Assembly (NCBI GenBank): GCA_004431415.1
Contig: QPMI01000515.1
Location: 1 to 64,000, forward strand
Reading direction: 5' to 3'
From: Cyanophora paradoxa CCMP329
Taxonomy: Eukaryota; Plantae; Glaucophyta
Length of the DNA stretch: 64,000 bases
The position numbers and the translations under genes are program-made. Position 1 is the first letter of the stretch, and every line of letters begins with the position of its first letter. The notes under the pieces were generated by a model. It saw nothing but the letters and a program-made list of their open reading frames with translations. It was not told the DNA's origin and made no database searches. Shown one piece after another: positions 1 to 40,230 of this stretch.

Positions 1-1023
1 GCCGGTGCGAAGCCGCCCCGCGTCGCCGCGCCCCACCTCGCGCTCGAATCAACCTTGCCCAGGAGTATGCCGCCCCCGCCCCGCCAACCCGCACCGCCAA
101 GCCCCGGCCGCCGCTCCGAGCGCCAGGTCCGTCTCCATTGATCCCTCCCCCGGCATCTCCCTACCCCTCCAACGCTGGCCGCAGCGGCGCCGGCAGTTCA
201 AAAAGAGGCCCGCGCGGCGACGAGGGGGAGAAGCCGCCCCGAAAGCGATCCCCGCGGAAGGTACAAGGGCGAGCGCGGAGGCGGCGGAGATCGAACGCGA
301 CGCCCCGTCCACGCGTCCGCCCCGCGCCCGACCCGCGCTCGTTCGACTTTCCGATCCCGCCCGCATCGCGCAGGCCGGCGGCGAGCGCGGCGTCGGGCCG
401 GCGTCTGCGGCCAGCCAAGGCTCGCCGGCGGCATCGCCCCGTGGCGCGCCTGCCGGCAGCGACTCCCAGTGCGTCGCCCGCGTGCACGCCCCGCCCCCCG
501 TTCCGCCCCGGCCCGCCCCGCCCCGCCCGCCCCGCCTCCGCCCCGCCCCGCCCCGGCCCGGCCCACCCCAGGCCCCGCCCTGCCCCTCCCCGCCCCGCCC
601 GCCCCTCACGAGCCGGCGCGCACGCACAGGGCCCAAGACGCGGCTGCCGACCCCCAGCCCAAAGAGGGTGCGCCCTTTCCCCACCACCCCCGCCCCGCCA
701 CAGTTTACAACAGGACCGACGCAGATGCCGGCGATCGCGGGGGCGCCCCGGGTCCGTCCGGCACCATGGTGCACTCGCTTGGCGTGCATTTTTGGCGTAG
801 ACGACAGCCGCGTGCTTACGCCAGCACCGCGCAGGTCCTCGTGGACCAAGAAGAGAAAAATATGCTCGAGCGGTTCAGGAAAGAGAAGGAGGACAAGCTG
901 CGCGCGGAGGCCCGCGCCGGGAAGCCAAAGGACCCGACCGGCTCGGCCCAGCAAGCCTCGGGCGTCAATGCAGCCGCGCCGTCCGAGCTAGAGTCGGTGG
1001 AGAACGCCCCCGACGACGCGTAG
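1..1023 (+). CDS. 3' exons of an intron-containing gene of unknown function (starts left of the window)
   Basis: GT..CAG-bounded C-rich introns separate coding-like segments; the last exon reads VLVDQEEKNMLERFRKEKEDKLRAEARAG...PDDA* (TAG 1021-1023). Confidence 0.4.
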
Positions 1024-4000
1024 GCGGCGCCCGCGCTTGCACGCCCTCTAGGCTTCGATTTTAGGATCCTGAGAATTCAGCCCCGTGCCGCCCGCTCGGA
1101 AACCCCGTCGAAAGCCGCCCGCCCGCTTGCCGCGGCGCGATCCATTGCATGATCACACCACCGCTCGCTAGATGGAGGGGATGGATGGACTGCCCGGGCC
1201 GTCCTCTAGATCCCCACGGCGCCTGTCTCGCCCGGGGCGCGCGCCGCGACGGCCGCCTTCATACCGATCGTCGCCCCGAGGGCGGGCTGCGCGGAGCGTG
1301 GGTCGTTGCGGGGCAGGCGGGGCGGAGAGACTCGCGCGGACCTTGATCGCGGCGGGCACGGATGAACGGCCGCGCCGGGAGGGCCGCGACGCGGGCGGGC
1401 TGCGTCTTCCCGGGCCTCTACGCATCCGGAATAGGCTCTAGCTCGCGTGCGCGCCGCGCAAGCCTGCCGGAGACGAGTTGGTGGGGCGGGCGTGTGAGGA
1501 ACGGGCGGGGCCCCGCGCACCGTCTGCAAAGGCGCGGCCGGGGTGGACCGGCGGTCGACGAGGGGATGCGCAGGGGGTTCTAGGATGCCCTGGAGCGCAA
1601 CGGGATCGTCAGGGCGACCGCCGCGGGCTCGCGCAGCCGAGGGAGACGCGAACCAAAGGTGGACCCGCGGGCCGCCGCGCGTCCTCCGCACTCCTGATCG
1701 TCCGAGGAAAGAATCTTTCTCGCTCCGAAGAGGCGCGGGGCCGAGGGAGGGGCTAGCTACAGCGCCGCACCGCACCGCGAGCGGCCGCTCGCCGCGCCGC
1801 GTCGGGGCGAGCGGCCGGGGCGATCAGCACCCGTGGAGGCACGAAAGAAGCCGCAGGAAGCGTGCAGGGACGGCCGGGCGGGCGACGGGCGCGATGCGAG
1901 GAGGCGCGGGGCCGGGCTCGCCGGATTCGTCGGCTTCGTCGCCAGCTAGAGGATTGAGAGGCTCCATGTCCTCGGAGCGCGGTCGGCGAGGTCGGGAGCG
2001 GCTCGCCTGCGATCCGCCGGCTCGGATTGCGGCCCGAGGCGATGGGAGGGACTCTACGCACCCTCAAACTCCCTCTGACAATGCCTGAACGCTGCTAGCC
2101 GGCGAGCGTGCGACCTTGAAAGGCCTCGTTTGCCGACGTTTGGCGCACCGGGGGTACCACGTATTCCATTTCTCACCGGCAGGACCCGCCGCGGCGGCGC
2201 GCCTACCGATTCGGCCGTCGGCATGCTCTCGCACGCGATCCACCGCACGCTTCGCCGCTAGCTAGCCGCCTGCGATCGCAGGTTTGCGCCCGCCACACCA
2301 TCCCGTTCGATCGCTGCCGCAATCGACCGTGCGATCCACGGTCGCTTGGATCGGTGCGGACCTGCTCGGGGACACGGATTCCCCGCCGCCTCGCGCTTGT
2401 ATTGCCCCACGTGCACGCAGCCTCGCGGCGGTTCACGACGAGCCGACGGGGCGGAGCGCCAGGCGTACGATTGGACATCGTCTAGACGGCGGACGCGGCA
2501 CGGTGCGAGGCGCCGCCTCGTGGGCGCTCGCTCGACGCCTTCCTGACTCGCGGCCGCGCTCGCACCGGCCCGGCCGGCGCGTGCGCAGATCGCCCGCCGT
2601 CGCGCCGGACAGCAAAGGCCGCCCGCGCGCCGCCGAACCGCCCCGCCGCTCCCTCGTCCCAGGCGCTGCAAGGAGCCCTCGCCCGGCCCGCCCCGCCCGC
2701 GCCCCTCTGCCCGCTGGAAGGTGCGAACGCTTACTCTTTCGCATTCGACGCGACCTGAAGGGGCCGGTTTCCTGCACGCGCAGGTCTGCCGCCGCGGCCC
2801 GCTTCCGCGCTTCGCGCGGGCCGGCGGGGGAGGACGACAAACGACGGGCGGATCGCACGGGCGGGGGCGCGTCGATGGGCACCGGCGGCGGGGCGCGGGG
2901 TGGGCGGGCGCGGGCGTCCGTCGGCCTCCATCTGCCCACCAGCGCCGTCGTCGTCGGCGCGGCGCGGACCGGTTCGAGCTCTTCTATGCGTCCCGCGCCG
3001 TCCTCCTCACGCCCTCGCCTCAGGTTCTTGGCGGGCGGCGCGGCGGCGGCCGGTGGCGCTCCCGCGCCCTCCCGGCGGGTGCCGCCGGCGGGGCTCGCGG
3101 GCGGCCGCCCGAGCCGCTGCATGACCTCCTCGGCAGACGTCGTCACGTCGATCGCCCCGTTCGTCGCGCGGTACTCGACGGGCACCGCCGCGCGCGGGTA
3201 GGTGTAATCGTCCGGCCCGCCCTCGTTCGAGGCGTCCAGAGCGTGCCGAACCTGCGCAGAACGACGAGGCGGTTCTCCTGCTGGCCGAGGCGAGCCCCAC
3301 CGTCGCCGTGAGCCTCGCAAGACCGTCGTGGGTAAGAGGTCGCCCCGCGAGTCACCATCGCCGCCACGACGCTCCGCGCAGGCATGGGGTCGGCGTGATC
3401 AGGCGTATGTGCCAGGGGGCCGGCGGAGGCGCCATCTCCTCCCGCTCGCGCGGGCGCCGGCGGCCGGCGGCCGCGCGGGGGCGACCCCGCTTCGGAGCCT
3501 CGTCCAACCCTCGCCCTCGTCTTCCGCCGGCGGGTCCGGACCGCCACGTCCGCCCGCGCGGCCGCGCTCGCGGCGCGGGGCCTTGGCGTCGGATCCTCCT
3601 CCTCCTCTCCTCCTCATCCTCCTCGTCGTCGTGTCGCTCCGACCGCGCGCCTTGGGCGTGCGCGGCGAGCAACGATGGCGGGAGATGCCTCTGGGGTCCC
3701 GAAGATGCGTCGGCACTCGGGACACCAGCGCCCCTCGGCGCGGCGAGCTCGCGCTCGACGCGCAGGCCCTCCTTCAGCTCTCCGAGCTCCCGCCGTCCTC
3801 GCTCTCCGAGCTCCCGCCTCCTCCCGTCGTCCGAGGCGGCGGCGGCGGCGGCGCCGGCGGCGGCGCCGGGCTCGCCTTCCCCTCCTCCCCGTCCCGTCGA
3901 CGAAGACGCCCCTCCGGCCTCGAGCGCGGCAACCGTCGGCTTCTCGAGTTCGCGGCGGCGCGCTCGAGCCAGGCCAGCGCCACGCACGCCTCTTGCCGGT

Positions 4001-4036
4001 GAGCGCGCGGGGCGGGGTGCGGGCGGGGGCGGCGCA

Positions 4037-7000
4037 CCTCGCGCTGCGTCTTATTGCATCGTAGTGCATCGTCGCCGTCCGCGGGTGTGCTGGGGAGGCG
4101 CGCCGTCCCTCGATGATGCTGGTGCAGACGTCGCCCTCGATCCGCCCCTGGGCCGCTGATCGCGCACCAGGTCGTCACGACGGCGCGCATCGTCCGCGGC
4201 GGCACGGCGACGCCCGTCCAGCGGCTCATGGCCTGCGCCGGGTGAGCCCGCCCCGCGCCGGCGGCGCGCTCGCCTCACCTGTTTCGCGAACAGGGTCCAG
4301 GACCCGCGGCGAAACGCATCGCCGCGGAGGTGAAGAGATGTACCCCTGGTCCTTGGCGCCTCGCTCAACAGGTGACGCCGGAAGCTCTCACGTACTCTGT
4401 TAGCGGCTCCTGACGCGCCGCGGCAGCGGTCGACGGAGCGCGCGCGGGGCGGGCGGGCGCGCACCTGGAGCTGCTGGGCGACGGGACGATCACGGCGCCG
4501 TGCCGCTTCTGCGGATGGGGCGTCGGCGGCGCGCGTCCCGGCGCGGCGCGGCGGGAGGCCCCGCACCGCCGTCTTGTGGGTGAGCGCGCCTCCTCGGAGC
4601 CGTCCTGGATCCGCATGCTCAGGATCGACATGTTCCACCGACCGTTGTCTTGCGCAGCGTCTCGCCGATCTTCAGGTGCTGGAGGAGGCCGGCGCGCCGG
4701 GCTGATCGAAAGGAACCAAGCAAGAGAGATTCCCTCAGGTACTTCGCCTTTTGCCGCGGCCGCTCCTCGGAGCGAAACGCGGCGTAGGCCTCGACGCGCC
4801 CGCGAACGACGTCCTCGAAGCGGACCCACGTTTTCTCGTTCTCCACTTCCGTTCCGCCTTGGACTCGGCGACGAGCTGGTTCTGAGGGTGCGCGCGGCGC
4901 GTCGGCGCGCCCCGGGGGCGGCGGCGCGGGCGGGAGGGAAGCTCACCCGCAGGTTGCGCAGGGCCTGACCGTGCGGGCCCTCGCTCCCCGCCGGCGCGCC
5001 GCCCGTCCCGCGACAAAGGCGGCGAGGTTGATGAGGGTGGAGGCGTAGCTCACGAGCGTCCCGGGCAGCGTGCCCGCTCCTCGCGCAGGAACCTGCCGCG
5101 GCGTTTGGTAAACGCCCCCCGCACCCCCCCTCCACCGCGCCCGCCGCCCCGCCTCACTTGAAGAAACGAAGCACGATTTCGACCGCGTCGACCCGGCTCA
5201 TCAGATCGAGGGTGAGCTCGCCTCCAGCCCTCGCGCATGCGGACGTAGCCAGCAGCCGCTGAATGATGCCAGGTCGTTCGCCAGGCTCGAGTTTTCGACG
5301 GCGTTGCCCTTGCGCGAGGCGTTCAACGGTGCCTGTCTCCACTCCCGATAGGCCGCGAGCTGCAGTTTCAGGGCCCGACTAAACGCGCCCTCGTGCAGGG
5401 CGTACGGCTGCCGCGCCTCGCCGGCCGGGGGCGAGCCGTCGGGCGACGGCGAGCGCGACGGGCGCCGGCGGCGAGCCGACGGCGGGCGAGGCGGCGCGGT
5501 CGATGGGCGTGAGCGGGCGCGCGTCGCCGTCGCTGCCGCCCTCGTCGCCCTCGGCCTCGCTCTCGGACGACGACGAGCTCGCGGACGAGGACGAGGGGTC
5601 CCCCGGCGCCGCCGGGCCCGCGGCCTCGATGGCGCCCGCCCCCGGCGGCGCGCGGCTCGATGCGGGGAGCGCGACGGCCCAGCTGTCGACGTCCTCGTCG
5701 ATCTCGAACAGGCGGAGATCGCTGGTGTCGACGATGGCGCTCTCCAGCAAGGACCGGTACGCCTCTCGCCTGCGGGGGGCGGGGTTCGGCGTGGTGGGGG
5801 CGGGGCGGGGGCGGGAGGGCCGAATAGAGGCACCTCCGTGCGATGAAGCGCGTGTTTTTAGCGCGAGCTCGCTCGTAAACGCCTCACCAGACTTTAGGAA
5901 TCCGATGGAGCCGTCGTTCAGGTACTCTTCCCACGAGTACTGCGTCGCCGCCTCCAGCGCGAGGCTCTCGGCGAACCACAGCGCCCATATCCCTGGTGCG
6001 CGCGGTTCGCGGCGCGTGCGCGCGCGCGGGCGAGGGCGCCGGCCTTACCGCAGGAGTGACCGTCGTTTGCAGGCGATCGGGAAGCTCCGTGACCCACGTA
6101 AACGACGGCAAGGCCTTGCTCGCCGCCCGCCTCAACCTCGGATCCGGCGGCGCGCCGAGCGAGTCAAGTACCTGCACCGCCTGCGGGGACGCGGTGCGCG
6201 CGGTCGTGGGAGGGGCGGGGGATGGGCGGCGCGTATACCGGCTCGCGCCGTCGAGGGCGAGCGTGACCAGTGGCCGCGCGTCGTCCACGTCCTCTGCGCG
6301 CCGCCCTGCCCCCCGCCGGTGCAGCCAAAGCACAGAACGAGCCCGCCGTTTGCCGCGTGCCATAGCGCCCGCTTTCGGCGCCTCTCGTCGCTCATCTTGG
6401 CGTATCGCCGCAGGATCGAGACGATGGTGTCGAGGCTGGCGGGTACAGGGCCTTGGCGCTCGCGTTGGGCTTCATGCGGTGCAGCAGGAGGGTCATCACG
6501 TTTGCGAGCATCGTATCCTACGCGCGCCCGGGGTGAGTGCGGCGCCGGAGGGGGGGGGGGGGGGGGGCGGGAGGGGGTACCGTTAGCCACTCCCTCTTGG
6601 AGAAGATCGCCAGGCGCCGCGCCGGGCGGGGCTCGGGCACCATCAAATCGATCTCCGCAGGATCGTGGCCTCGGATGGCGAGCGAGGCCCTCTTGAACGC
6701 GAGGCCGAACGCGGGATCCCGGCCCGGAAGCTTGGCCAGGAGCTGCTCCGCCCCCTCGAGGCTCAGGAAGGACCACTTGCGAGCCGACCCCAGGTTCTCC
6801 TGCCCCGCCTCGCCGGAGAGCGCGAGGAAGCTGACCAGCGTTCTCGCCAGGGTGGCAAAGTGGGGGCGCCCGAGCGTCTTCGTCGTCGCGAGCCAGCGGT
6901 GCGGGCTGTTCTCTCCGAGGCTCGGGTGGCTCCTCGCGATCTCACGCCGCACGCTGGCCGTGTCCTTTGGGCCGCGTAGATGCACTGGCGATGCTGGCGA

Positions 7001-7527
7001 GCGGGATGTACCAGGGCGAGACCTCCGGAACTTCGAGCCGGCGGACCTTCAGAGCGAAGAACCTCGCCCGTCTACGTGAGCACCTTGACGTCGCACCGCT
7101 CGAACGTCTCCTGCGTCCGCCGCTCGATCGCGAGGTGAGGTCCCGTAGCAGTGCCGCAGCCGCGGGCTGTCCGACCCCTCCCAGCAGATCGACGCCAGCT
7201 CCTCGACGTGCTGGAGGGAGAGGACGCGCGGCGGGCTCTCGGTCGGGTGCAGCTGGCCCCGCGGCACGATCGCGAGCATCTCCCAGAGGAGGATGAGGCT
7301 CTCCGTCTGCGGGCCGGCGATCGGCCTCGACGCGAGGCCGTGCGGTCCGGTGAGCTGCCTCGCCGCCTCTTCCGCCGCCTCGGCGGGTCCGTTGCCGAAT
7401 ATGCGCTGAACCTGGGGCAGGGCGGCCGCGGGCCCGGCGTCGGTGCGGAACACGTGGAGGCGCTCGGGCCCGGCGTAGGCGTCGAACGAGACACCTCCCA
7501 CGAGTCGCGCGCAAACGCGAGCGACAT
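4037..7527 (-). CDS. Intron-containing tyrosine recombinase-like gene (several single-base frameshifts in this assembly; further 3' exons may extend to ~1,440)
   Basis: Stitched exons give a core-binding-like region (QLAAYREWRQAPLNASRKGNAV...LTLDL...FLREER...GTLVSYASTLINL...QALRNLRNQ), then YR catalytic motifs in the right order: LLL.FLSISP.R(AG)LLQHLKIGETL (Arg ~4693), THKTA (Lys ~4574), GSWTLFAKQ, WTGVAVPPRTMR (xxxR ~4186), QHT...TMHYD (His, Tyr ~4061). The start at ATG 7527 is tentative. Confidence 0.62.
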
Positions 7528-7659
7528 GGCGCCGCTGCGCCCGCGGCCTGCGCGCGCCTCGATAGCAAGGGCCTGCGCGCTCCGATTATGCGTTGAAAGA
7601 GGACGCGGGAGCTTGCGGGTTAGGGCGGGTGCGCGTGGGCGGGGGAACGAGCGACTGTA

Positions 7660-7745
7660 AAAAAAAAATGGGACGGCGTAAACGGGGGGGGTACGTTTGG
7701 TCCCCGTAAACGCCGATCCGGCCACTCGGATTCCCGTAAACCGTG
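7660..7745. promoter_or_regulatory. Candidate bidirectional promoter between the YR-like and TET/JBP genes, with 3x CGTAAAC
   Basis: The less GC-rich intergenic segment carries CGTAAAC at 7677, 7705 and 7735 (spacing 28 and 30 bp), next to a poly-A run. Confidence 0.3.
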
Positions 7746-7992
7746 TCGAGACGATAGCTTACACGCAGCTGCGGTAGTTTGCTTGGCCAGCAATCCGCAC
7801 ACAAGCTCGGTTCTCGGGTACCTCTATCGGCGGGCGTGGTCGCGCCCGCTTCGGGAACTTGCACTTTCCGATCGATTCCGACACCGCCGGGCGTGTCCAA
7901 AGTCTCCGGTAAGCATTTCGACCCTTTCGGACGTCGTCTGCGGCTAACGGTCGCCGCGGCGGCCGCCCGTTGCAGGCGTCGCCTCGGCGGGC

Positions 7993-10293
7993 ATGGCGGG
8001 AGGCTCGCTGAAGAGAGCGCGCGATCGAGAAGGTGATCGCAGCGACCTCGGCGATGTCAGCGGGCCCGCGGCCGCGCCCGAGGCGCCCGTTCCCATCTGG
8101 ATGGCGTCGGCGGCGTCCCGCGCGTCGAGAAAGGCGCGCGCCGCGCAGCGCGGACGCATGATGAACATCTCGCTCGCCGCGGGTGCGGGGGGAGGGTCGG
8201 CCCCGGCGGAGCGCGGCGGCGGCGGCGGCGGCCTCGTCTGGATGAACCGGAAGAGGGAGCTCCAGGCGTCCGGCCTGGCGCTCGGCGGCGCCGCCGCGTC
8301 AAAGACGCCCGCGCCCGGCGGGCCCGTGTACTCGAAGAGTCTGCTCCCCGCACTTTCCCCTCCGCCCCTCCCAACGGGGATCCCCCGCAGGCCCCTACAA
8401 ACGCGCCGAGCTGGTCGCGACGAGACGATACGGCTATCGATCCTTCGGCCCCGTCCGGTGGCGGGACCAGGTCCTGTACGTGCGTCCCCGGGGTCGCGGG
8501 GGGCTCCCGCCGCGCGCCCCGACGGCCGCCCCCCGCAGCTCCCTTTCGGCGTCGTCCCCGAGGGCATGACGGGGCCGCCGGAACGGATGGAGGAGCACTT
8601 TGGCTCGGAGCTGGGGCTGAGCCCACCGCCCGTCGACCTGCTCGCCCTGCGCGCGATCGAGGGGGCCTTTCTCGGGCGTCCGCACGGCCCGCCGCACGCC
8701 TCGGCGCTGGCGTCGTGGGCCGTATCTCCCGAGCGGCGCGTCGCGCTGCCCTGCAATCTCCTCGGGGGCGGCGTCGACTCGCGCTTCATCCGGCAGCAGC
8801 GGGCCGAGGTACGGCGCCCCCTCCCCCCGCGCCCCGCCCGCGCCTCACGCGCCCGCAGGGCAAGTTTGCCGCCTACGTCGCGCCGCTCCCGCCGGGCTGC
8901 TCCAAGGAGGACGAGGCGCGGCACGACTACGTCTTGGACCGCGGGGCGCAGACGTGCATCTCCCTGGGCGGCGCCCTCGCCGCCGTCCACCTCCCCGGCC
9001 TCTTCCGCGAGGGCGCCGGGATCGAGCGGGTCGCCGCCGCCGTCGCCTGCGCCTCCACGGCCTTTACGTTTTCCATCCGCCGCAGCATCATGTACAACGA
9101 AGCCCGGGTGCGGCCCGGCCCGCCCCGCCCCGCCCCCCGCGCGCGCCCCGGGCTCTGACGGGGCCCGCCGCGCAGGACCAGAAGCTGCTGGACGAGGCGC
9201 GCGAGGCGGCCGAGGCGGCGCTGCGGACGGGGCGGCTCGACGTGATGCGGGAGATTCTCGCCAAGCGGCCGAAGAGGAGGCCTCGGGCCGCCGCGACCGC
9301 GCGGCCGCGCCGGGGCAAGAAGAAGAAGAAGAAGGAGCACGAGCGCGGCCCGAGGATCGTCACCGGCGTCCAGCGGGGCCAGGGCGCGACCGTCCCGATC
9401 CCGGTCCGCGGCCCCCGCCCCCACCCCCCCGCCCGAACGCGCGCGGGACGCGGGGCGAGCCGACCCGCCCTTTCCCAGATCTCCCTGAACCCGCAGTACG
9501 GCGCGGACACGAACGCGAACCGGCGGCTGCACCTCCTCAACGGCCACCTCGTCGGCGTGCTCGAGTACCTGTTCCCGGCCCTCTGCGCCATCGACGTCAA
9601 GGCCGGTTGCGACATGGCGGAGATCGCCCTGAAGGTCCTCGAACGGCACCCGTACAGCTACGGTCCGCGAGCGCGTGTGCGCCGGCCCCCGGGCCCGCTC
9701 GTGCCCGACGCGCGGGTCGCGGGCGCGCAGGAACCTGGACGATGCACTGGATGAACCCGCCGGAAACGTGAGCTGCCGTTTACCCCTCGCTCCCTTTCCC
9801 GCCCTCGTTGATGCCGACGGCCCTCTAGGATATCAAAGGGCCACCGGGACCGCAGCGACGCGCAGGAAGCCTACGCCGCCCTCGTCTACTTTCACCCCGA
9901 GGGCAAGCGGGACCGGCCCCTGCACCGGCTCCGCTTTCCGGCCCTCGGCATCTCGCTCGACCTAAGGCACGGCGACGTCGTCTTTATTCGAGTGCGCGCC
10001 CTCTATCCTATCCCCCCCCCCTCCATGCCTGCCGATCGACGGCGCCCCCGTCGACGCCGCGGCCGCCAGGGGCACATGCTGGAGCACGAGGTGGTGGCGA
10101 GCGAGGGCACGGATGCGAGGTTCGCGGGCGTCCCCTCCGCCGGCGCCGGCCCCGGCCCGATTCCGCGCCCCCCTCGCGCAGGTACTGCATCGTCTTCACG
10201 CTGGGAAAGAACCTGAAAGTAGACGCCGATTCCGGGTCGAGCAGCGACTCTTCTACGTCCTCAGATAGCGACTCTTCGAGCTCGGAAGACTAG
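7993..10293 (+). CDS. TET/JBP-family 2OG-Fe(II) dioxygenase, 8 exons, ~612 aa
   Basis: Exons 7993-8808, 8859-9107, 9176-9403, 9479-9662, 9731-9767, 9829-9991, 10070-10119 and 10182-10293 join through GT-AG introns with no frameshift. The C-terminal domain GTWTMHWMN..ISKGHRDRSD...LRFPALGISLDLRHGDVVFIRGHMLEHEV...RYCIVF contains HxD, the distal His and the 2OG-binding Arg, with JBP/TET-like spacing. A poly-Lys NLS-like tract is present. Confidence 0.78.
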
Positions 10294-10574
10294 CGATAAC
10301 GTAGGGCGAGCCGCCGTGATGGGAGGGGGGGCCGGGGGGCCGGGATCGAATCGTGATGGGAGCGGGCGGGCGGCCGGCGGCCGACGCGCGTGAGCTCGGG
10401 CGCGCGTTGAGGTTATGCGGCGCGCGCGGGGCGGTCCGGCGCCGCCGGGAATGGAGGGGGCCGGGGGGCGGGGGCCGGGGGCGGGGGCCGGGGCCGAACG
10501 TTTAGAAGAGGGTCCTGGCTAGGAACTAAAAATCAGGTGGGTGTGGTACGGGCCTGTGCGTGCATTTGCTGCAT

Positions 10575-11699
10575 CTAGTTCCGTGCGAGCGGCCCCGGGA
10601 TATCCCATTTTAATTGCCCCTGGACTGGTATGGAGTATGTTTCATGATTTACTTTCAATAATCTTGAAAGGGACATGATTGTAATATAATGACCATTCCC
10701 TTCATCATCAAATATCAGCATGAGATTAACCTTATGCTTTCTGCCTGGGTTACTGGATTGATGCAGGGGATAAATAACCTCTCCATCGATTCCAAATATA
10801 TTAATGCTAATGCCTGCATTTTGAGCCTCGAATTTATCAATAATCTCAGCATCACAGGCAACAGGGAATGGGATGTTATCGAAATTCAGAGCCAGCGGAT
10901 TATAAGCGATTGCTGAGTATTTCCATTTGCGATATTGTGAAAGCTCATTCCTCTTATGGGAGTTTATCGCTTTTCTGTGAATATATGCCAAAATTGCATT
11001 TTCGAAGCAGGAATCATCTATATTTCGAATATTCACTGTGGCTCTCTTCCTAGCAATCCACTCTGGGGTTTGTAGAAAGCATCCACCAGTTGGAGCATAA
11101 CTCATAATAGCCACTCTGAGTATTTCGATTCTTTCCAAGCGATAGCTATCAACCACATTCATCTGCTCTTGACACATTTGGGCTGCTTTATTCAGCTCAG
11201 TTCGAATATTTCTCGACCTGGTTAATACAAAATAATCACTGTAAATGTATTTCGATATCCAAACCTGTGGATTGCTCACTTTTACGAACTTGCAGATAAA
11301 AGACAAGCGAACCTTGATTGCCCTGAATTGATCTAAACCCTGCTTTAATCGATTAGGAAGGGATGTAGCAATTCTGTCCAGGAATTCAATCACATCTACA
11401 ACAACTTCCCTTCTGGCTCTGTAAGTGAGCCAGCGATATAATTCATTCATGGCTGTTCCATCTTCTGCATCTGGTTCTATTTGCCTAAGCCTATCCAATT
11501 CATCCAAGGTTTCAATTTTATCATATAGGTTATTTGCTTTTCTGGTTAATCTGCTTAAAGTGGGTCTGCCCTTTGCAATTAAATCTATTTCCCGGTCATA
11601 TTCAGCCTCTGTAATTTCATGGGCTGCATAAAGTGTTCCCAGCAATCCCATGAGTTCCCATTTCTTCTCCCTTATGAGTTTGTTGGTAATTCGGGGCAT
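10575..11699 (-). pseudogene. N-terminal (vOTU-like/terminal protein) region of a Polinton-type protein-primed PolB, truncated at ~10,632
   Basis: Motifs YAPTGGCFLQTPEWI..KRATVNIRNIDDSCF, LNFDNIPFP, IDKFEAQN..ISINIF, IYPL, VNLMLI..GHYITIMSLSRLL. No exonuclease or polymerase motifs follow, and the last residues derive from the GC-richer flank. Confidence 0.75.
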
Positions 11700-12160: not shown

Positions 12161-12345
12161 TGGTTGACTTAGTGGGTGGAGTTGAGGCACTTTTTATTTC
12201 TTTTTAGGGCAGAGTCCTCTTTTAGAATCTGTGAAAAAATGAGTCAACTCCCCCCACTTAGTCAACCTAATCGATAAATAAACCATAAATAAAAGACTGT
12301 TTGGGTCTTTTATGATAAATTTGAGTCAACTGTGAGTCCACTTTT
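12161..12345 (-). repeat. Inverted copy of the terminal iteron-like unit (candidate replication origin)
   Basis: GGTTGACTTAGTGGGTGGAGTTGA...TCAACTCCCCCCACTTAGTCAACC inverted repeat; the whole unit matches 32141-32330 in reverse orientation. Confidence 0.75.
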
Positions 12346-12353
12346 GAGTAAAC

Positions 12354-14947
12354 CTAAACTTCAACATCAGAGTCATAATCTGATGCATCAGGATCAGCAG
12401 CAGGTAGTTCTTGTTTCATCCTTGGATTAGCTTCTTCCTCAATAGTCTCATCATCTACAAGCTTCATCTTTCTGAATTCCTCAAATACTTGTGGGAATAG
12501 GAAATGATAGTATTGTTTGCCATTTGTAGTTTTCACTTGGATATATGTAACACTTCTCATTTCAGTATAATATCGGCGACTATTATAATCGTTTTTATAT
12601 TTATTGCTGGTAATAAACTCCTGGAACCACTTCCAGGTTTCCACAAGGCTACCAGACTTGCATTTATTCTCGGAAATTAAGCCTCGATCCACAAGCCACT
12701 TAGTGAACATAAGAATGATTGGAGCGCACACCTGTTGGGCTAAATAGTATTTATTTGTAAGGGGTCTATCAGCAATCCAGTTCACATCCTCACATTCAAC
12801 TTTGGTTCTCAAATAGTGGGCAATGTTTCGAATATTGCAGTGATCATTAAGCCATTTTACAAGTGGAAGGAAGTATGACCTATCCTTTGCGAATTTCTTA
12901 CTAACTTCAACAACCACAAATCGCCTATCTCCAGCTTCAATTTTCACTGGAATGTTGTTATTGCTGGTGAATATAATCCTGGCAAAGTTGCTTTTTGTGT
13001 ATGAATCTATCCCTTTGTGTTCAATTACAATCTTATCAGAAGTTATGAGATCTTTGAGCATATCATTATTTTCGAATGTGTCCTTGCCTGAGGCTTCATT
13101 CACAACAATCAAGATCTTATCCTCTCTATTGTGGGCAAATCGACCAAACAGATCCTCTTTTGGCTTTCCAGTTGCATAACTTAGGGCATCTCCAAGTATC
13201 TTCTTTTGGAAAGTATCAACCAACACATTTTTACCAGTTCCCTGCTCACCAATGAAGATTAAGGATACTCCATTGAGTTCCCCAGGCTTTTGCAGCATGT
13301 GGGCAAACCATTTCAACAGATATTCATAGGTATTTTGATCCTCACCAGACATTAAGAACAAGTGATCAAGGAAAGGCTTAATCATCTCAGCAGTTACATC
13401 CTCTGGAGCATTTTCGAATTGCTGATGGTCGACCTTCATTCCTGGATAGAGATTAAATACAGACTTGCATTTTGCACTGAGAGTAGCAGGAGGTGGGAGG
13501 AAATCCATGTAAGTTGATCTTGTGGCTGTTGGATCCACAATCCATTTCCTAAATGATTGCTCCCATTTCTCTTTCTCATTATCTGTCCCCTCATTCACAA
13601 TCACCTTATGCATCAAGTGGGGGAAATGCTTTGTAGAGAGCTTCCCAATATCTTTGGGCATCCAGCAAAGTAGTTGTTCATCCCAGAGCATCACACAACC
13701 AACATTTTCAACATGATGCATTCGAGCATTGAAATACCTCTTATGCACATTGTAATGTTCAGCCAAAGGAGGGATACTTGCAGTCTTGTAATCGATTTCA
13801 TCTGTGTCCTCTGGTAGGAATGCATACTTTTTGGGGAAGAGTTCCTTGAAAAGCTCATTGTTATCTTTGCTCAACCAATAAACCAAGGATTTGAAGGTCA
13901 ACACTTTGCCAGGCTCAGCCTTCTTCTTGCTTCTGCGAAGCTGTGTAAACTTCTCCTGGCATTCATCATAATCATACTTGTCACTCTGTTCTGAGAATTG
14001 GTGGAAGAGTTCAGCTTGCATTTTAGGGGTGAACTTGTTGTCTTCCCCAACATTGATGATGACCAGTCCTACATCAATCCAAGTTTTATACTCATTAGCT
14101 CTCTCACCATTCAGACCCATTATAACACTTTGTAGCAGTTCGAAAGTAACAGGATTTTCGGGTTCAGTGTCTTTTTCAGCTTCTACCTTCTCAGTCTTCA
14201 CTTTATCACTTTTTGGCTCCTTTTTAACTGGTTTTGGCTCAGGGCTATAATTTGCGAATGCAGAAATATTCGATTCATCCACAAGTTTAGTAGAAGCTGA
14301 GAAGAAAGATACAAAGAAGTCCTCATTTCGCATTAACACTTTGTCACAGTCAACGAATTTCTTAAAGCAAACGTTTTTATCAACATCTTTCTTTGATTTA
14401 TTTTGAGCATCCAGAGTCTCACCTTTGCAGCAATTGAGGCAGATAAGGTTCTGTGTGGAGCTGTAAACTCCACTGTCATAATCCTCATTTTTCACCAATC
14501 CCATAGCTTTGAAAAGCTTGGGGATATCTTCATGTTTGCATGCAAGCGATTTAATGATAAAGTGGGCTGAGATCTTGAACTTGGTGACATCCTCCTTGAT
14601 CAAATAAACCCTTCTATGGCGAACTGCAACAGCAATATCGTTAATCGAAGTGGTCCCAGATCGCTTCCATAGCTTATCTCTCATCTCTCTTACAACAGTT
14701 TCAGCCTCAGCATAGTTTTCAGCAATGTTCTCCTTCAAATCAGCGAATTTATCCAGGTCCAGGTAAACTCTGGTGACTTGTTCAGGCTGAATGCATTCAG
14801 CCAGGTCTTAACCTTGCTATTATCAATGGCTTCAAGGGCATCTTCAGCAGAATCAAATACATGGGTGACCTTGTTGCGATCACCAATGAGAGTACTAAGG
14901 AATGTAGCATTTTCAACAGGGGTGGCGAATTTCTCGATTTTGTTCAT
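12354..14947 (-). CDS. AEP primase-PriCT2-D5-like SF3 helicase fusion (1-nt frameshift at ~14,808)
   Basis: The frame upstream of 14738 reads ECIQPEQVTRVYLDLD (AEP DxD). Downstream: KISAH, YDSGVYS, PriCT-2 (YKTWIDVG...FSEQSDKYD), Walker A GEQGTGKN, Walker B VVNE, motif C IFTSNN and DRRF. ORF 14735..14947 supplies the N-terminus. Confidence 0.9.
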
Positions 14948-15164
14948 TTTCGATTTTGGGGACTTCTACCTTTAACGAAGAAAATAATTTCGGAAGGAGG
15001 AATTGTCTTTTATATATATCCTATTATTTGCCAAGTCCTTAAGTAGTTTTGGGTCGGGATACTGTCTCGATATATAGGTACAGTTTTAAAAAAGAGGGAA
15101 GAAAGCTGTCATTTTTTTGCCTCCGATCAAATCGATTTCTACAAAATTTGTTTCGATCGAGAAT

Positions 15165-15490
15165 TTATTCTTCGATATATTTCCGAGGTCTTCCAACCGG
15201 TTTATGCTCTTTGGGTGTCTTGGGTAGTTCGTCTTTTTTCTTGTGGTAGTATTCCAGCGCTTTCGCCTTTTTCTGTTCGCGATATTCTTCATTTTCCCTG
15301 TATTTCCTCTGGTGTCTGAGGGCAATCTTTTTGAGTTCTTCTGGTGTGTGAACTGTAGCGGCTCCTTGGGATAATCGTTCCTCCTTCTTTTATGATAGGC
15401 TTCGCGTTTTCTTTGGGCATCTTGCTCCCTTTTCAGTCTCAGCTTCTCTGCTTTTTCATCATCTGTGAGTATCTTGCGGATATTCGGCAT
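15165..15490 (-). CDS. Small basic AT-hook protein (1-nt frameshift in an A-run at ~15,390)
   Basis: The corrected frame reads ...RHQRKYRENEEYREQKKAKALEYYHKKK...PVGRPRKYIEE*. Confidence 0.6.
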
Positions 15491-16929: not shown

Positions 16930-17724
16930 TTATAAACCGCGTTTATATCGCATCAATTTATTGCTATGGACTTGGCTTTTCACTTCTTTAGGGGCTTCCT
17001 CTTTCTCTGGTGGTTTCAGTTCATCTTCTTTCTTCTTGGGCTTCCTGTGGAAGCGAGGAAAATCGAAATCTCCAACTAAATCGGCTTTATCAACATAGTA
17101 GCCCACATTATACTTGAAAGATGTATAAACAAGGAATTGATATGAGTGGACATACTCTTCAAACAGTTGATAGAAATCTTCTTTGCGAGGAAAAGTCGAA
17201 AACTCCTCTGCAAATGCTTCCAGCTCTTTTTGATTGCTTGCACAAACCATAATTACTATATCACTATTGCAGCGAATAACAATTGCGACCTTTCTTAATT
17301 TTTGGGAAATAGTTATAATTGATATATTGACATGTCTGCCACGAACATAAAGCATTCCCACTGTTTTATCTCGACTGAGATCCAGCTGGTCATTTTCTAT
17401 CATATCCTCTAAAATCACCAGCATATGGTTAAGTTCTTCTCCTTTCTCCCTTTTTGCCTCTCTTTCTTTTATAATTTTCGACATGTATTGGGGATCCCAT
17501 GCACCCAGTTGAACAGTAGCAGCTTTGTCCCAAAAATGTGAAAATGAGGTAGCGGATATAATAAGTGTTGTATCAATCTTTTTGGCATCATGCAGCTGTT
17601 TCAAATAATATTTTACAGCTTCTGTTTTTCCGCATCCACTTTTTCCGAGTATGAGTAGTCTGAAAGGGGGTTCTATCATTTCACCAGCCACAAATTCATC
17701 CAGATCAGAACTTGGTATTGGCAT
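16930..17724 (-). CDS. A32-like (FtsK/HerA superfamily) DNA packaging ATPase
   Basis: Walker A GKSGCGKT, Walker B LVILED, RGRHVNISIITISQ, IRCN. Confidence 0.93.
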   Translation of the reverse strand: MPIPSSDLDEFVAGEMIEPPFRLLILGKSGCGKTEAVKYYLKQLHDAKKIDTTLIISATSFSHFWDKAATVQLGAWDPQYMSKIIKEREAKREKGEELNHMLVILEDMIENDQLDLSRDKTVGMLYVRGRHVNISIITISQKLRKVAIVIRCNSDIVIMVCASNQKELEAFAEEFSTFPRKEDFYQLFEEYVHSYQFLVYTSFKYNVGYYVDKADLVGDFDFPRFHRKPKKKEDELKPPEKEEAPKEVKSQVHSNKLMRYKRGL

Positions 17725-17780: not shown

Positions 17781-18712
17781 TTACAGGTTAGATAGGAATC
17801 GTTTAATGCAACCCTCAATATCAGTTTCGGTGTATGGGATTCTTAGGAGTTTGATATTATTAGCTTCACAGTACCGATTTTTAATTCCATCACGAATTTG
17901 GGTATCTTCAAAGGCCTTCTGACCTCCAAACTGTTCCACAGGTTTGAAATGTTGTATACCATCATATTCAATTGCAATTTTGAGAGATGGAATATAAATA
18001 TCGAATGGGAGAACTCTTTTATGCTTGCAATCAGGAAATCTGTGGATATTGAGAAGTCTAAACCAATTTCTTTTAGGGCTGCTTGAACTTTCGTCTCACC
18101 AATAGACGATCTACATGACAGACAGCCATACCCATTGAGAAAATCACTTGGTGTCTTTTTGAATTCAAGATCACACTTTTTACAGATAATGGTAACTTTT
18201 GTTCTTGCATTTACATACTCAACTTTAGATAAATCGTAGTTATCTCCATAGAGTTTCAAAGCTCTCTCTGTGAATTTCTCAATCCCCATTTGCAACTTAT
18301 CTTTGATGCGATCCATTTTACATTTTGCATGCCCATCACCATGCATGTGTTTGTGTGGCTTTTGATTGAAATACTCTTGACATTTCTTACAGAATATTTT
18401 AATAGGGTCTTCTCCCTTAATATAAACAGATTCTGAATAGTCATAAAGATCTCCATGCTTTTCCGTCGCTCTTTTGACAAACTGTTCAGTGGTTAATCTA
18501 TTTGACATTCCCTTTTTAATATTCCCACATGAGGGACAACCACATTTCTGATTAATATGACTATGAGCAGCTTGCCAAAACTCAGTCTTGCAGGTGTTGC
18601 ATATAATATTAATCTTCTTCATGGTCCCTTCATAGATAACTTTAGAGTAATCATAATTATAGCCATGCACTTCGACAGCTTTTTCGATAAAGGACTTAGT
18701 AGTATAAGACAT
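17781..18712 (-). CDS. Zn-ribbon repeat (DUF723-like) plus C-terminal Vsr/PD-(D/E)xK-like endonuclease (1-nt frameshift at ~18,050)
   Basis: Three repeats F..KA...HG..YDYS...Y......I.C..C. The shifted frame continues LPFDIYIPSLKIAIEYDGIQHF...RDGIKNRYC..NNIKLLRIPY to the stop at 17781. Confidence 0.8.
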
Positions 18713-18785: not shown

Positions 18786-20156
18786 CTACAAATTTATACG
18801 ACGTAATCCATCTTTGTCTACAATAATAAAGCTATGCATGAGAGCGCGAACATTAACATCAATTGTCTTATCTGAAGGCATGTAGAGGGTGAGGAATGAA
18901 GATGAGGAATTTGTCAGGTCAACAAATCCACTTTGAGCAATATTTCGAATTGCCTTTTCTCCATCAAGGCAGAATGGGAGTCCTGAAAGGACATAGCGAT
19001 CAGCAACCTTATCCATGTTAGAGCATTTGAAGGCATCAGCAATTAGCTCAGCACCTTTGAGTAGGGAAATTGGCTCAGTGGCAAAAAGTCGCTGTCCATT
19101 TATTTCAGTTGTGAATGTGATGTCTTTGGAGTTGGCATAGGTCTTAAGAACACTGTGGGAGCCATTGGATTTGTCAACAGTTTCATGATCACGAACTGAA
19201 ACAAGCAGAGCATATACAAGACCTGAGATTTGAGAGAGGTTAATTCGATTGGGTTGGGCATTGCCCTTGGCAGGGAAAGCACTAGCATCTACAAATCCAA
19301 TATCAAGGGAGGGAATAGCCATGCCAGTTGTCTTAACCTTTTCAATGACAGTAGCGAAAAGCTCATCAGAAACATTAATAGCATGCATGTAAAGGCGAGG
19401 AGAAGTAATAGAAATAACAGGAGTTGTTGCACCAAGACTGAAAGTTGTGATATTTTGACCAACATGGGCAAGTGTGGCATTAGCAGTATCACCAAGACCA
19501 TCATCTTCTGTCTTATCAGCAACTGTCCCACCAACAACAGGGAGAGAGCGACCACCATAGGAAGTTTCAACATAACCCTTTCCAGCATCCTTAAACCAAA
19601 CAGTAACAACCATTTCACCAGATAAAGCACCAAGGGGAAGGTAGTGATTTAGCCAAGGCACAGGGATTTCAACAAAGAATGAGCCACCAAGGCGGTTGGT
19701 TCCATGAGCAGGGATGCCATGAACCATGCCCATTGATCGCTTCTTTTTAGCTAGTTGATCCTCCGAATAATAGACCAGGGGGAAATGAGCAAGGAAATCA
19801 GATGGAATATGGTAGGTGTAAGATCCATAGGTAATTTCAAGTCGCTGAACTAAAGCACCAACTGGGCGAGTGTATCCATTGCGAACTAGGTCAGTATCAC
19901 CAGCAAACGTGATGGCTGGAAGGTCGAAAGCAAGTTCGAGTTTTCCACAGAAATTGTAGCGAGGTAGCTTGAAGGAAATGCGATTTCCAACATTATTCTC
20001 AAAAGTATTGCTGGGATTCACAACAACTAGAACTGGCTTAGACTTGGATTCGAGACCAAGCATAAGGGAGTTATCCAGGAAAAAGGCTTTCGCCTCTTCT
20101 GGGGTTGTTAGGGCTTCTTTCAGCGAAAGTCTTTGAAGAGTGGAAGTGATATCCAT
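18786..20156 (-). CDS. Double jelly-roll major capsid protein (~456 aa)
   Basis: Size, beta-strand pattern (ISFKLP, LVQRLEITYG, FFVEIPVPW..YLPLGAL..MVVTVWF) and position between penton and ATPase; ATG at 20156. Confidence 0.85.
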   Translation of the reverse strand: MDITSTLQRLSLKEALTTPEEAKAFFLDNSLMLGLESKSKPVLVVVNPSNTFENNVGNRISFKLPRYNFCGKLELAFDLPAITFAGDTDLVRNGYTRPVGALVQRLEITYGSYTYHIPSDFLAHFPLVYYSEDQLAKKKRSMGMVHGIPAHGTNRLGGSFFVEIPVPWLNHYLPLGALSGEMVVTVWFKDAGKGYVETSYGGRSLPVVGGTVADKTEDDGLGDTANATLAHVGQNITTFSLGATTPVISITSPRLYMHAINVSDELFATVIEKVKTTGMAIPSLDIGFVDASAFPAKGNAQPNRINLSQISGLVYALLVSVRDHETVDKSNGSHSVLKTYANSKDITFTTEINGQRLFATEPISLLKGAELIADAFKCSNMDKVADRYVLSGLPFCLDGEKAIRNIAQSGFVDLTNSSSSFLTLYMPSDKTIDVNVRALMHSFIIVDKDGLRRINL

Positions 20157-20209
20157 TATATTCTCTTTTATTATACTGCAACATAAAAAATCTACCAATG
20201 ATCCTTAAT

Positions 20210-31207: not shown

Positions 31208-31480
31208 ATGGATAGTAAAACAAAAAAGTTTATTGATGCTGCTATGACAGTTCATGGTAAAGATAAATTCGATTACAGTGAGACACATTACATCAAAGCT
31301 CAAGAGAAAGTATCTGTTAGATGTTTGCAGTGTAACAAGGTGATCCTAACCTATCCCTTTAATCATGTGAAGGGATCAGGGTGTAGGGAATGCAACAAAA
31401 AGCACTCTCAGGCTTATAGGAAAAGGGCTACTTCATCAATTAGAGTAGAGTATAGGGATATTTGCATTAGGTTCGATTAG
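31208..31480 (+). CDS. Single Zn-ribbon (DUF723-like) repeat protein
   Basis: FIDAAMTVHG..FDYS...C..C...H..GSGC..C, the same repeat as in 17781-18712. Confidence 0.7.
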   Translation: MDSKTKKFIDAAMTVHGKDKFDYSETHYIKAQEKVSVRCLQCNKVILTYPFNHVKGSGCRECNKKHSQAYRKRATSSIRVEYRDICIRFD

Positions 31481-32099: not shown

Positions 32100-32960
32100 A
32101 ACAATCCCCTTGATTCCCCCTATTATATTATATTTATATTTAAGTGGACTCAAGGTTGACTCATATTAATCGTAAAAGTAGTAATAGTATATGGATTTTG
32201 TTACGAATTCAATGCAAGGGTTGACTAAGTGGGTTGAGTTGACTCAAATTTCACAGGAAATATTTGGGACCTAAAGTTTTCTAAAAAGGATTTCAAAAAA
32301 TGTGTCAACTCCCCCCACTTAGTCAACCCTGACCATAAACAGTAAGGATTTGAGCTAACAAGTATCACAAAGTGAACATATTGAGTCCACTTAGAAGATC
32401 AACCTAACAGTTTAGAGTCAAATTTACTTGGGAATTCGATTTGTATAAAAAAGTGAGTCCACCCTGACCATATTCAATAAGCATTCCTCTTAATCCCCTT
32501 GTTTATATTTACATTGATTAATATTTAATACTAAGTGGACTCATGGTTGATTCATATTAATCGTAAAAGGAGTAAATGTATATAAAAATGTGACCATTTC
32601 AATGCTAAGGTTGACTAAGTGGGTTGAGTTGACTCAAATTTCAGAGGAAATTTTGAGATCCAAAGAATATTCTATAAAAGATTTTGAAAAATGTGTCAAC
32701 TCCCCCACTTAGTCAACCCTGACCATATACAGTAAGCATTAGAACTTAAATGTATCACAAAGTGAACATTATGAGTCCACTTAGAAGATCCACTTTTGAA
32801 ATATAAGTTGATTTTGCTTGAAATTTCAAAGTTGATCTAAAAGTGAGTCCACCCTGATTGATTATGGTAACAAAGTTGACTAAGTTGACTAAGTTGAGTC
32901 ATCTTAAGAAATTCAAGGAGACTAAGAGTTCAAAATGTTTATGAAAAGTGAGTCAACTTA
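32100..32960. repeat. Two diverged ~390-bp tandem units plus a partial third, rich in GTTGACT/AGTCAAC and GAGTCCAC inverted motifs
   Basis: TAAGTGGACTCA at 32141 and 32532; AAAGTGAGTCCACCCTGA at ~32450 and ~32840. Confidence 0.85.
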
Positions 32961-32984: not shown

Positions 32985-33244
32985 ATATTTAATTGATTTA
33001 ATAGGAAAAGAACATGATTTAATCGAATTTATTGATATAATTCCGATTAGATTCATTTAGGATTCAATTAAGATTAATCGAAGTTATAGATATAATTCCG
33101 ATTAACTACAATTAAGATACAATATCGATTAATCGAGTTTATCGATATAACATCGATTAAATTAATTGAAAATGCATTTAAAAATATGAAAATTCATGTG
33201 AAAATTCAAATAAATTAATCGATTTTATTGATATAACATCGAAT
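32985..33244. repeat. Very AT-rich subterminal tract with recurring TTAATCGA/TCGATTAA/GATATAA motifs
   Basis: Repeated short palindromic words are directly visible. Confidence 0.6.
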
Positions 33245-33319
33245 CACACATATGAATATTCATATTTTAATCCTGAGGCGGAACGCCGAGGGATTAAAAT
33301 ATGAATATTCATATGTGTG
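33245..33319. repeat. Terminal hairpin of the PLV: perfect 29-bp inverted repeat around a 17-nt self-pairing loop
   Basis: CACACATATGAATATTCATATTTTAATCC (33245-33273) pairs with GGATTAAAATATGAATATTCATATGTGTG (33291-33319); host-like GC content starts immediately after. Confidence 0.92.
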
Positions 33320-39723: not shown

Positions 39724-40230
39724 TAGGGTTGCCGGGCTCAAGTTTGAGTGCACTAAAACTTGAGCGTTTTAGTCAAGTTTTAGTTTTAGTTTTAGTGGCC
39801 CACTCAAACTTGAGCTAAAACGGCGGCTGGAGGGGGGGGTTCCGGTGGCAGAACTGCCTCATTCTGGGTGCAGAACCGCCCCATTCCGGGTGTTAATCGT
39901 GCTTCCATCGGATATACAGCCCTTCTGCAATGAAAAGCTACCCGTTAAGCCTCTTTTCTGAGGCAAGGATGCCCTTGGAAGGCCTACCCCCCCTCCAGAC
40001 CGCACTTCTTTACCCGAGAATCGTGTGTCTAGAGCGATAACCCGGTGGGAAAACACTTCTGACTTGCTATTAAACACTTCTGAAATGCGTTTTGGCTGAA
40101 TTTTTGTCTTTTGCGGGGCGCTCTTGCATCATTTTGTATGGACTCAAGTTTTAGCCTAAAACGCTCAAGTTTGACCGCACTTTTAGTTTTAGTGGGGGAG
40201 GCTAAAACTTGAGCTAAAACGGCAACCCTA
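39724..40230. mobile_element. hAT-type MITE (507 bp)
   Basis: TIRs TAGGGTTGCCG / CGGCAACCCTA; 8-bp TSD CCACTGAG / CCTCTGAG (1 mismatch); subterminal CTCAAGTTT/AAACTTGAG repeats. Confidence 0.8.

Follow-up and report, generated by a model that had tools for sequence, protein, structure and literature searches.

Why would a tyrosine recombinase (YR) and a TET/JBP-like dioxygenase stand head to head in the genome of a glaucophyte alga? In the window analysed here, the first 64,000 nucleotides of a Cyanophora paradoxa contig, two intron-split genes face away from each other with 465 bp between their start codons, the recombinase ATG lying at 7527 on the minus strand and the TET ATG at 7993 on the plus strand, in agreement with the original prediction. 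The region between them (7528-7992; GC 65%, CpG observed/expected 1.43) may act as a shared promoter. That prediction read the pair as a mobile element carrying its own DNA-modifying enzyme. We consider it probable that the pair is the right end of a larger, intron-bearing cargo element of C. paradoxa that is mobilised by its YR through the mechanism proposed below.

A predicted protease-recombinase fusion behind assembly errors

As assembled, the recombinase is unreadable and is interrupted by dozens of one-base frameshifts. About 36 of these, in 4700-7610, are assembly deletions whose missing bases are present in short-read contigs, and among the matches listed the contigs that restore the frame carry 0-1 substitutions. 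With read-supported bases counted, exon 1 is open from the ATG at 7527 to the donor at 6580. A decayed pseudogene was considered and rejected, on the short reads for 4700-7610 and, for 3020-4700, where it is the sole basis, on the near-identical sequence P0008. The gene aligns exon by exon to P0008 and, at 58%, to P0009.

The restored gene (3020-7527, minus strand, 3' end approximate) is predicted to encode, in order, an N-terminal region, an Ulp1/CE-clan protease, a YR, a C2H2-like zinc finger and a low-complexity tail. The original reading ended it at 4037, whereas it runs on through the intron 4037-3992 to about 3020; that reading also captured the YR but missed the N-terminal Ulp1-like protease, whose fusion to a YR recalls a domain pairing known from oomycete Cryptons (PMC3212892). 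At least 11 short introns are predicted (6580-6518, 6238-6181, 6048-5993, 5833-5770, 5157-5093, 4946-4882, 4566-4509, 4464-4410, 4278-4233, 4037-3992 and about 3300-3252), and their presence would argue against an RNA intermediate.

The YR core-binding and catalytic domains (4037-5400, minus strand) are placed by motif order and profile matches. The ordered motifs originally reported are all recovered, with R at about 4690, K at about 4575, P-R-T-M-R at 4199-4185, H at about 4090 and Y at about 4062, residue roles being assigned from motif order. The catalytic set is thus complete and in order, the first His of HxxR being replaced (P-R-T-M-R), and P0008 holds the full set as well. P0008:340-725 matches the XerD HMM TIGR02225 (E 9.5e-6), the SAM-like domain Phage_int_SAM_1 matches the YR at E 0.057, and the Atlas score for Phage_integrase is 0.95. 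Judged by its sequence, the minus-strand gene includes a tyrosine recombinase. The Ulp1/CE-clan cysteine protease domain (5993-6592, minus strand) is called from motif order (W-L-T-D at about 6590, G-H-W at about 6272, D-S-L-G at about 6165 and Q...D-G-H-S-C-G at about 6055) together with two weak matches, ChlaDub2 at E 0.015 and, at E 0.23, a ULP protease; it has no Pfam match. Pfam likewise returned neither GCR1_C nor DUF3435 in P0008 or P0009, and searches with single exons against Pfam, PHROGs and PDB sequences gave nothing useful.

The 5' part of the recombinase is overlapped by a spliced antisense RNA (6743-7609, plus strand, 5' end estimated; RNA contigs X17 rec 18 and X19 rec 23). Its plus-strand GT-AG intron 7350-7420 is seen in RNA contigs, and a further intron, 7135-7184, is suggested by zero RNA depth at 7144 and by the model P0002. 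The strand is assigned from intron orientation, and the sequencing runs are presumed to be RNA.

An expressed TET/JBP-like gene

The plus-strand gene (7993-10293) has an open spliced frame of 10 coding exons (7993-8338, 8391-8479, 8539-8808, 8859-9107, 9176-9403, 9479-9662, 9731-9767, 9829-9991, 10070-10119 and 10182-10293) and a 575-aa product identical to P0001, the published gene model tig00020944_g16345. The H-x-D...H...R core of the original 612-aa model is intact; its length is not, since that model keeps introns 8339-8390 and 8480-8538 as coding sequence, and an RNA contig skips both. A 5' UTR (7711-7992) contains a GT-AG intron (7909-7975) that is also skipped in RNA contigs (X17 rec 19 and X19 rec 24). 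RNA thus bears out splicing for the first two TET introns, and no sense-spliced recombinase RNA is among the RNA matches listed. The TET gene is transcribed and under purifying selection: among the matches listed, the synonymous share of differences between paralogs is 21/40 against 27% expected (p=5e-4). Over the stretches listed, the DNA contigs show no indels in the gene.

By sequence, this is a TET/JBP-like 2OG-Fe(II) dioxygenase. The metal and 2OG ligands (9842-10184) are H473 (9842), D475 (9848), H528 (10085) and R539 (10118), the codon of R539 being interrupted by the last intron, and the core H473-R-D475, H528 and R539 is invariant across paralog alignments. Pfam Tet_JBP (PF12851) is the best or only Pfam match in all nine of nine TET paralogs, at E 0.033 for the 575-aa protein and 1.4e-4 for the best paralog, all below the curated cut-off of 34.9 bits, and Atlas features point to Tet_JBP (0.91). 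Both family assignments of the original prediction are therefore supported, by Atlas for each protein and by Tet_JBP Pfam and the XerD HMM respectively. The predicted TET structure contains a double-stranded beta-helix, for which Foldseek returned CcTet/NgTET1 at E 0.05-0.14, level with prolyl hydroxylases, and the AlphaFold YR model (pLDDT 35) gave no meaningful fold match in a structure search. The AlphaFold input alignments held only 2 and 9 sequences (pLDDT 35-36).

Host-like DNA abutting a Polinton-like virus

The original case for a mobile element leaned in part on a block richer in GC and CpG than the DNA right of 33 kb. The GC values do differ (73% vs 59%), but CpG observed/expected is similar (1.22 vs 1.16) and the genome average is 67.6% GC (PMC6704402), which rules out base composition as a mark of foreign origin; the pair's block has host-like composition, and the DNA right of 33 kb is the atypical part. 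Rfam returned no match, and neither did Pfam left of the recombinase gene. In 1-10600, the visible part of the element, we found no reverse transcriptase, RNase H or DDE transposase, no KDZ transposase with terminal inverted repeats, and no split or inverted repeats of the DIRS/Ngaro type.

A GC-rich tail (10294-10599), with a composition change point at 10599, is the candidate right terminus. A perfect 10-bp palindrome is centred on the junction at 10601/10602, and just inside it two 7-bp arms (10522-10528 / 10576-10582) form an inverted repeat; both may be chance occurrences. The sharp GC step at about 10600 truncates a viral ORF and leaves the TET 3' end whole. An assembly chimera at 10600 is countered, with modest support, by 37 nt bridging the junction in an independent DNA contig (X16 rec 16), which stops matching at 10636. 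The truncated ORF (10575-11699, minus strand) belongs to an AT-rich virus-like element and ends about 8 codons inside the GC-rich DNA; it has no database match, and a presumed similarity links it to the N-terminal portion of the protein-primed polymerases of Polintons. Beyond the junction extends an intronless Polinton-like endogenous virus (10600-33319, GC 39%) with a primase-helicase, an A32 packaging ATPase, probable capsid genes (called from gene size and order), patatin, SAM decarboxylase and a right-end hairpin. Its left terminal repeat and an integrase were not found in view, and its ORFs have no relatives in IMG/VR, metagenome contigs or phage records.

A lineage-specific family

Diverged homologs of both genes occur as consecutive models (g13065/g13066) on tig00000179, at 58% and 48% identity, and the chance of such a TET-YR adjacency is about 1e-3. 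The diverged pair thus recurs as a mobile family would, although depth does not point to a high copy number: contigs of this copy lie at 135-185 and single paralog contigs at 137-206. Because this depth equals that of a single paralog, the near-identical tig00020944, 00000104, 00020538 and 00020539 may represent a single locus that was assembled several times. Thirteen TET models are spread over 13 contigs, several of them without a known YR neighbour, and the two YR-linked TETs do not form one clade (p-AU 7e-47). Relatives of TET or YR were absent from IMG/VR, metagenome contigs and phage records, and the TET clade had no detected match outside C. paradoxa. We saw neither a left end nor a direct repeat, and no empty site; the left part of the element lies outside the window.

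Discussion

How might such an element work? By analogy with Cryptons and Starships, the near-terminal Ulp1-YR-zinc-finger gene would be the mover, recombining the two ends, excising a circle and reintegrating it, and the TET gene between the YR and the end would be a passenger. The originally proposed anti-silencing role is plausible, since mCG in C. paradoxa stands at 32% and is concentrated on repeats and on genes that are silent (PMC12344493). TET could oxidise 5mC at CpG, the host's repeat-silencing mark, so that the common promoter, rich in CpG, or else the element as a whole stays expressible; this is its most likely activity, with thymine oxidation or a CMD1-like product as alternatives. 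The antisense RNA over the recombinase start might hold the mover down while TET stays on. This copy most likely landed in the Polinton-like virus, cutting one viral ORF.

Each half of the combination has precedents. Some oomycete Cryptons (CryptonF-2_PS, CryptonS) contain a C48/Ulp1 peptidase, and like them the present element is DNA with a YR and an Ulp1-like protease and has no long terminal repeats in view; unlike them, it shows no match to the CryptonF domain GCR1_C, its YR resembles XerD/phage-integrase clusters, and it carries a divergent TET gene, is probably larger and resides in a glaucophyte. Crypton terminal direct repeats measure 4-6 bp (PMC3212892). Starships of Pezizomycotina (PMC11162782) share an inward-pointing YR near one end, cargo, low copy number and short terminal features, whereas here there is no DUF3435 match, the YR is fused to Ulp1, and no sequence relationship was shown; moreover, a Starship opens at its 5' end with the captain gene, while here TET comes before the YR when counted from the candidate end (10600). 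TET/JBP passengers occur in DNA-1_cRei (CMD1) and Helitron2-2/2-3 of Chlamydomonas, a 5mC-bearing alga (bioRxiv 10.1101/2022.06.16.496473), and fungal KDZ elements are cited, at second hand, as carriers. These share an expressed TET/JBP passenger, a host with 5mC and the same proposed self-regulation, but here the mover is a YR rather than a KDZ transposase or RepHel, the visible part shows no TIRs or 8-bp target duplication, and the TET clade is confined, as far as detected, to C. paradoxa. Ngaro retrotransposons nest in Cafeteria endogenous virophages, sometimes within a gene and once in pPolB (PMC8547959), and in both cases a GC-rich YR element breaks an AT-rich endogenous virus; in contrast to Ngaro, the visible part here has introns and lacks reverse transcriptase, RNase H and split direct repeats. 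TET passengers and Ulp1+YR are thus each already known, and we found no paper joining YR and TET in the literature searched, whose coverage is incomplete, in line with the original remark that it knew of no described YR+TET family.

Could the pairing be incidental? TET might be a separately mobile cassette or Helitron-type cargo that has repeatedly inserted next to Ulp1-YR elements, leaving a pair that is no functional unit. The YR-linked TETs are indeed not monophyletic, and in P0004 and P0005 TET lies behind a different N-terminal domain; yet chance would seldom bring a TET next to a rare YR subfamily twice independently (~1e-3), and ancestral linkage with later shuffling fits too, as do fragmented gene models, because the YR search covered only models of 590-1880 aa. 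We regard the cassette as unlikely. Less probable still is a viral reading, in which the block would mark the border of an integrated replicon, a large DNA virus or something virus-like, that contains spliceosomal introns. The YR would then serve as the integrase of this replicon, and TET would act on the replicon's own DNA, for instance by converting T or 5mC into hydroxymethyl bases, and not against host silencing. Viral clusters are among the Atlas neighbours of both domains and giant-virus insertions are reported in C. paradoxa (PMC12344493), but 1-10600 holds no capsid, terminase or polymerase gene, GC is host-like, the introns are short and GT-AG, and neither IMG/VR nor metagenome contigs yield relatives. 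We give equally little credence to sedentary or domesticated genes in ordinary host DNA, with a junction made by arrival of a virus fragment or by deletion. Near-average GC and CpG, a depth that suggests low copy number and the lack of a demonstrated terminal repeat suit that account; a multigene family that is specific to the lineage and contains the pair more than once does not, nor does a broken partner that is the viral ORF and not the TET gene, nor the retained YR catalytic set, which is no longer present in Cbf2 and Gcr1, yeast genes descended from Cryptons (PMC3212892).

Beyond the preferred reading of a YR-mobilised cargo element, we tentatively raise a broader possibility: glaucophytes may harbour a class of giant, intron-bearing elements, not described before and mobilised by a YR, and the pair may sit at the terminus of one of them. 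Such elements would be a Starship-like analogue built independently on an Ulp1-YR fusion, and a single divergent promoter in their terminal module would tie the recombinase to a TET that actively erases 5mC, the antisense RNA acting as off switch.

This locus shows how polishing errors in the C. paradoxa assembly hide real elements. The alga is culturable and EM-seq and RNA-seq data exist, making the self-demethylation idea directly testable: does the expressed, CpG-rich block form an island of low methylation next to an endogenous virus that is methylated? If the proposed reading is true, TET/JBP capture would reach a further mobilisation chemistry, the tyrosine recombinase, beside the KDZ and Helitron types, and would extend to glaucophytes, pointing to 5mC oxidation having been taken up repeatedly and independently as a means of countering silencing.

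A divergent recombinase-dioxygenase pair

The GC-rich left block of the window (1-10599, 73% GC, short introns) carries two divergent genes, both probably intact: a tyrosine recombinase fusion gene on the - strand (YR gene, 7527 to ~3020) and a TET/JBP-like dioxygenase gene on the + strand (TET gene, 7993..10293). The TET gene is transcribed and conserved, the pair is repeated, antisense RNA overlaps the recombinase gene, and the right junction is sharp. We regard it as reasonably likely that the YR-TET block is a mobile element. To its right lie a virus-like, intronless block (10600-33319, 39% GC) and a repeat-rich one (33.3-64 kb, 59% GC). The original prediction contrasted a GC- and CpG-rich element with its host, an argument that measurement does not bear out: 73% GC is near the genome mean of 67.6% (PMC6704402), and CpG observed/expected is 1.22 in the YR-TET block versus 1.16 right of 33 kb. 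The CpG-poor block is the virus, at 0.33 (0.26-0.42 along 10600-33319).

In the assembly (PacBio RSII reads assembled with Canu, then polished with Quiver and by majority-rule mapping of Illumina reads; PMC6704402), many one-base shifts interrupt the YR frame. Over 4700-7610, short-read contigs from two DNA runs show ~36 one-base gaps with 0-1 substitutions per listed piece, and all 12 listed gaps are bases absent from the window; the TET region has zero such gaps in its own short-read contigs. With read-supported bases counted, exon 1 has an unbroken frame between ATG 7527 and the donor at 6580, so the proposed 465-bp head-to-head spacing holds. P0008, a near-identical database protein, runs uninterrupted across the catalytic exons, and almost every shift in the window there is a missing base. 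Because reads supply bases (4700-7610) and the P0008 frame is continuous (compared over 3020-4700), the YR gene is probably intact in the living genome. Spliced models were searched by single exons or via the database proteins P0001 (TET), P0008 and P0009 (a 58% identical YR protein), with joined exons used for frame checks.

The ordered catalytic motifs expected of a tyrosine recombinase are all there (R, K, P-R-T-M-R, H, Y), the first His being replaced; P0008:340-725 matches XerD (E 9.5e-6) and phage-integrase clusters (Atlas score 0.95). Ulp1/CE-clan protease motifs, with weak matches to ChlaDub2, lie upstream of this domain and a C2H2-like finger (E 0.03) downstream, the gene's tail reaching ~3020. 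Pfam gave no support for a Bro-N domain in this gene. Convergent with it, 1-1023 (+) holds the 3' end of a spliced gene with zero Pfam matches.

The TET gene comprises ten GT-AG exons yielding an open 575-aa frame, identical to the published model g16345. A product of 612 aa had been predicted, a length reproduced by reading through the first two introns, but an RNA contig (blocks 7711-7907, 7975-8338, 89 nt and 8539-8806) splices both, together with a 5' UTR intron; these three introns are thus confirmed and the longer model is rejected. The predicted HxD...H...R core is borne out by H473, D475, H528 and R539, invariant across aligned paralogs. Among Pfam families, Tet_JBP is the top or sole match for 9/9 of these, though below cut-off (best E 1.4e-4); Atlas features concur, and a low-confidence structure model gives a double-stranded beta-helix weakly matching CcTet, NgTET1 and prolyl hydroxylases. 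Against paralog contigs, 21 of 40 listed differences are synonymous (27% expected), and a paralog likewise appears in RNA runs. Assignment to the TET/JBP family is good; the substrate is a prediction. Two paralogs, P0004 (tig00021583) and P0005 (tig00021046), share an N-terminal domain without counterpart in the window gene.

Two RNA contigs spanning 7186-7609 opposite the YR gene lack 7349-7419, a + strand GT-AG intron; a second at 7135-7184 is implied, and a further piece begins at a + strand acceptor, 5398. The runs behind these contigs are presumed to be RNA, their type being guessed. The spliced antisense product has a 182-codon ORF that merely mirrors the YR frame, and no sense-spliced YR piece occurs among the matches listed.

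Recurrence and relationship to known elements

Does the pair recur? YR homologs found were only tig00020538_g10388 (near-identical) and tig00000179_g13065 (58%), and TET homologs include tig00020538_g10386 and tig00000179_g13066 (48%). Model tig00000104_g4813 starts in antisense exons over YR and finishes in TET, so tig00000104 has the pair too. Repeated assembly of a single locus may account for the four near-identical contigs (the window's own tig00020944, tig00000104, tig00020538 and tig00020539), because this copy's depth (135-185, unchanged across the right junction) matches that of single paralogs (137-206). The expected recurrence is carried by two diverged families, with the tig00000179 pair bearing consecutive model numbers (chance ~1e-3). 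YR-linked TETs do not group together in the TET tree, from which we infer that TET was either shuffled among carriers or often lost its YR partner. Searches run outside C. paradoxa found no relatives of the pair.

Ulp1 and YR are combined in oomycete Cryptons (PMC3212892), YR-led cargo elements are known as Starships (PMC11162782), and TET passengers occur in KDZ, Helitron and DNA-1_cRei elements (bioRxiv 10.1101/2022.06.16.496473, for KDZ at second hand). Domain searches of the candidate element showed neither GCR1_C, as in CryptonF, nor DUF3435, as in Starships, and it is therefore placed in none of these groups; its mode of action is most likely that of a Crypton/Starship-type element. Our incomplete coverage of the literature yielded no description of a YR+TET element.

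The right junction and the neighboring virus

The AT-rich block is a Polinton-like endogenous virus with a primase-helicase (12354-14738), an A32 ATPase (16930-17724), a probable major capsid (18786-20198), two penton-like ORFs, a patatin-F5/8 fusion, fibre-like repeat proteins and a SAM decarboxylase; IMG/VR held no relatives. Tandem 55-nt units (33019-33269) precede a right-end hairpin (33245-33319, arms of 36 nt around a 3-nt loop) that coincides precisely with the virus-host border. A ~45-nt unit with inverted partner 3' of the primase-helicase gene (12234-12345) recurs twice near the right end (32217-32860), possibly as origin repeats. ORFs at 17843-18712, 31208-31480 and 15086-15490 appear shortened or frameshifted, and may contain the same polishing errors as the YR gene. 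Further right, a long inverted duplication (36919-38696/62030-64000, 78-93% alike, ~25 kb between) brackets a gene (45.6-53.4 kb) encoding GCC2/GCC3-like cysteine repeats, and a ~500-bp MITE-like element with terminal inverted repeats was identified by eye at ~39724-40230.

GC falls at 10599, where a 374-aa viral ORF crosses the junction and stops ~8 codons within GC-rich DNA; the TET gene is complete, as is its 300-bp tail. We take the cut ORF to resemble the N-terminus of a polymerase, for which the searches run gave zero confirming matches. The junction is most simply read as an insertion of the YR-TET element into the virus, a situation like that of Ngaro elements, likewise YR elements, within endogenous Cafeteria virophages (PMC8547959). 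Deletion, or the arrival of a viral fragment, could possibly have produced the same junction; within the window the virus shows neither left terminal repeat nor integrase. One DNA contig spans the junction by 37 nt with zero differences. It ceases matching at 10636 with 790 letters remaining, and summed contig depth over 10500-10690 is ~1350-1770 versus 135-185 in unique parts; further copies of the virus, or an indel, may lie behind both.

As an element, the pair would be moved by its YR by way of excision, a circular intermediate and integration, the route suggested for Cryptons (PMC3212892), with the antisense RNA perhaps restraining the recombinase. The protease would strip SUMO- or ubiquitin-like marks, and TET would oxidise 5mC, opposing the repressive CpG methylation of a host with 32% mCG and methylated repeats (PMC12344493).
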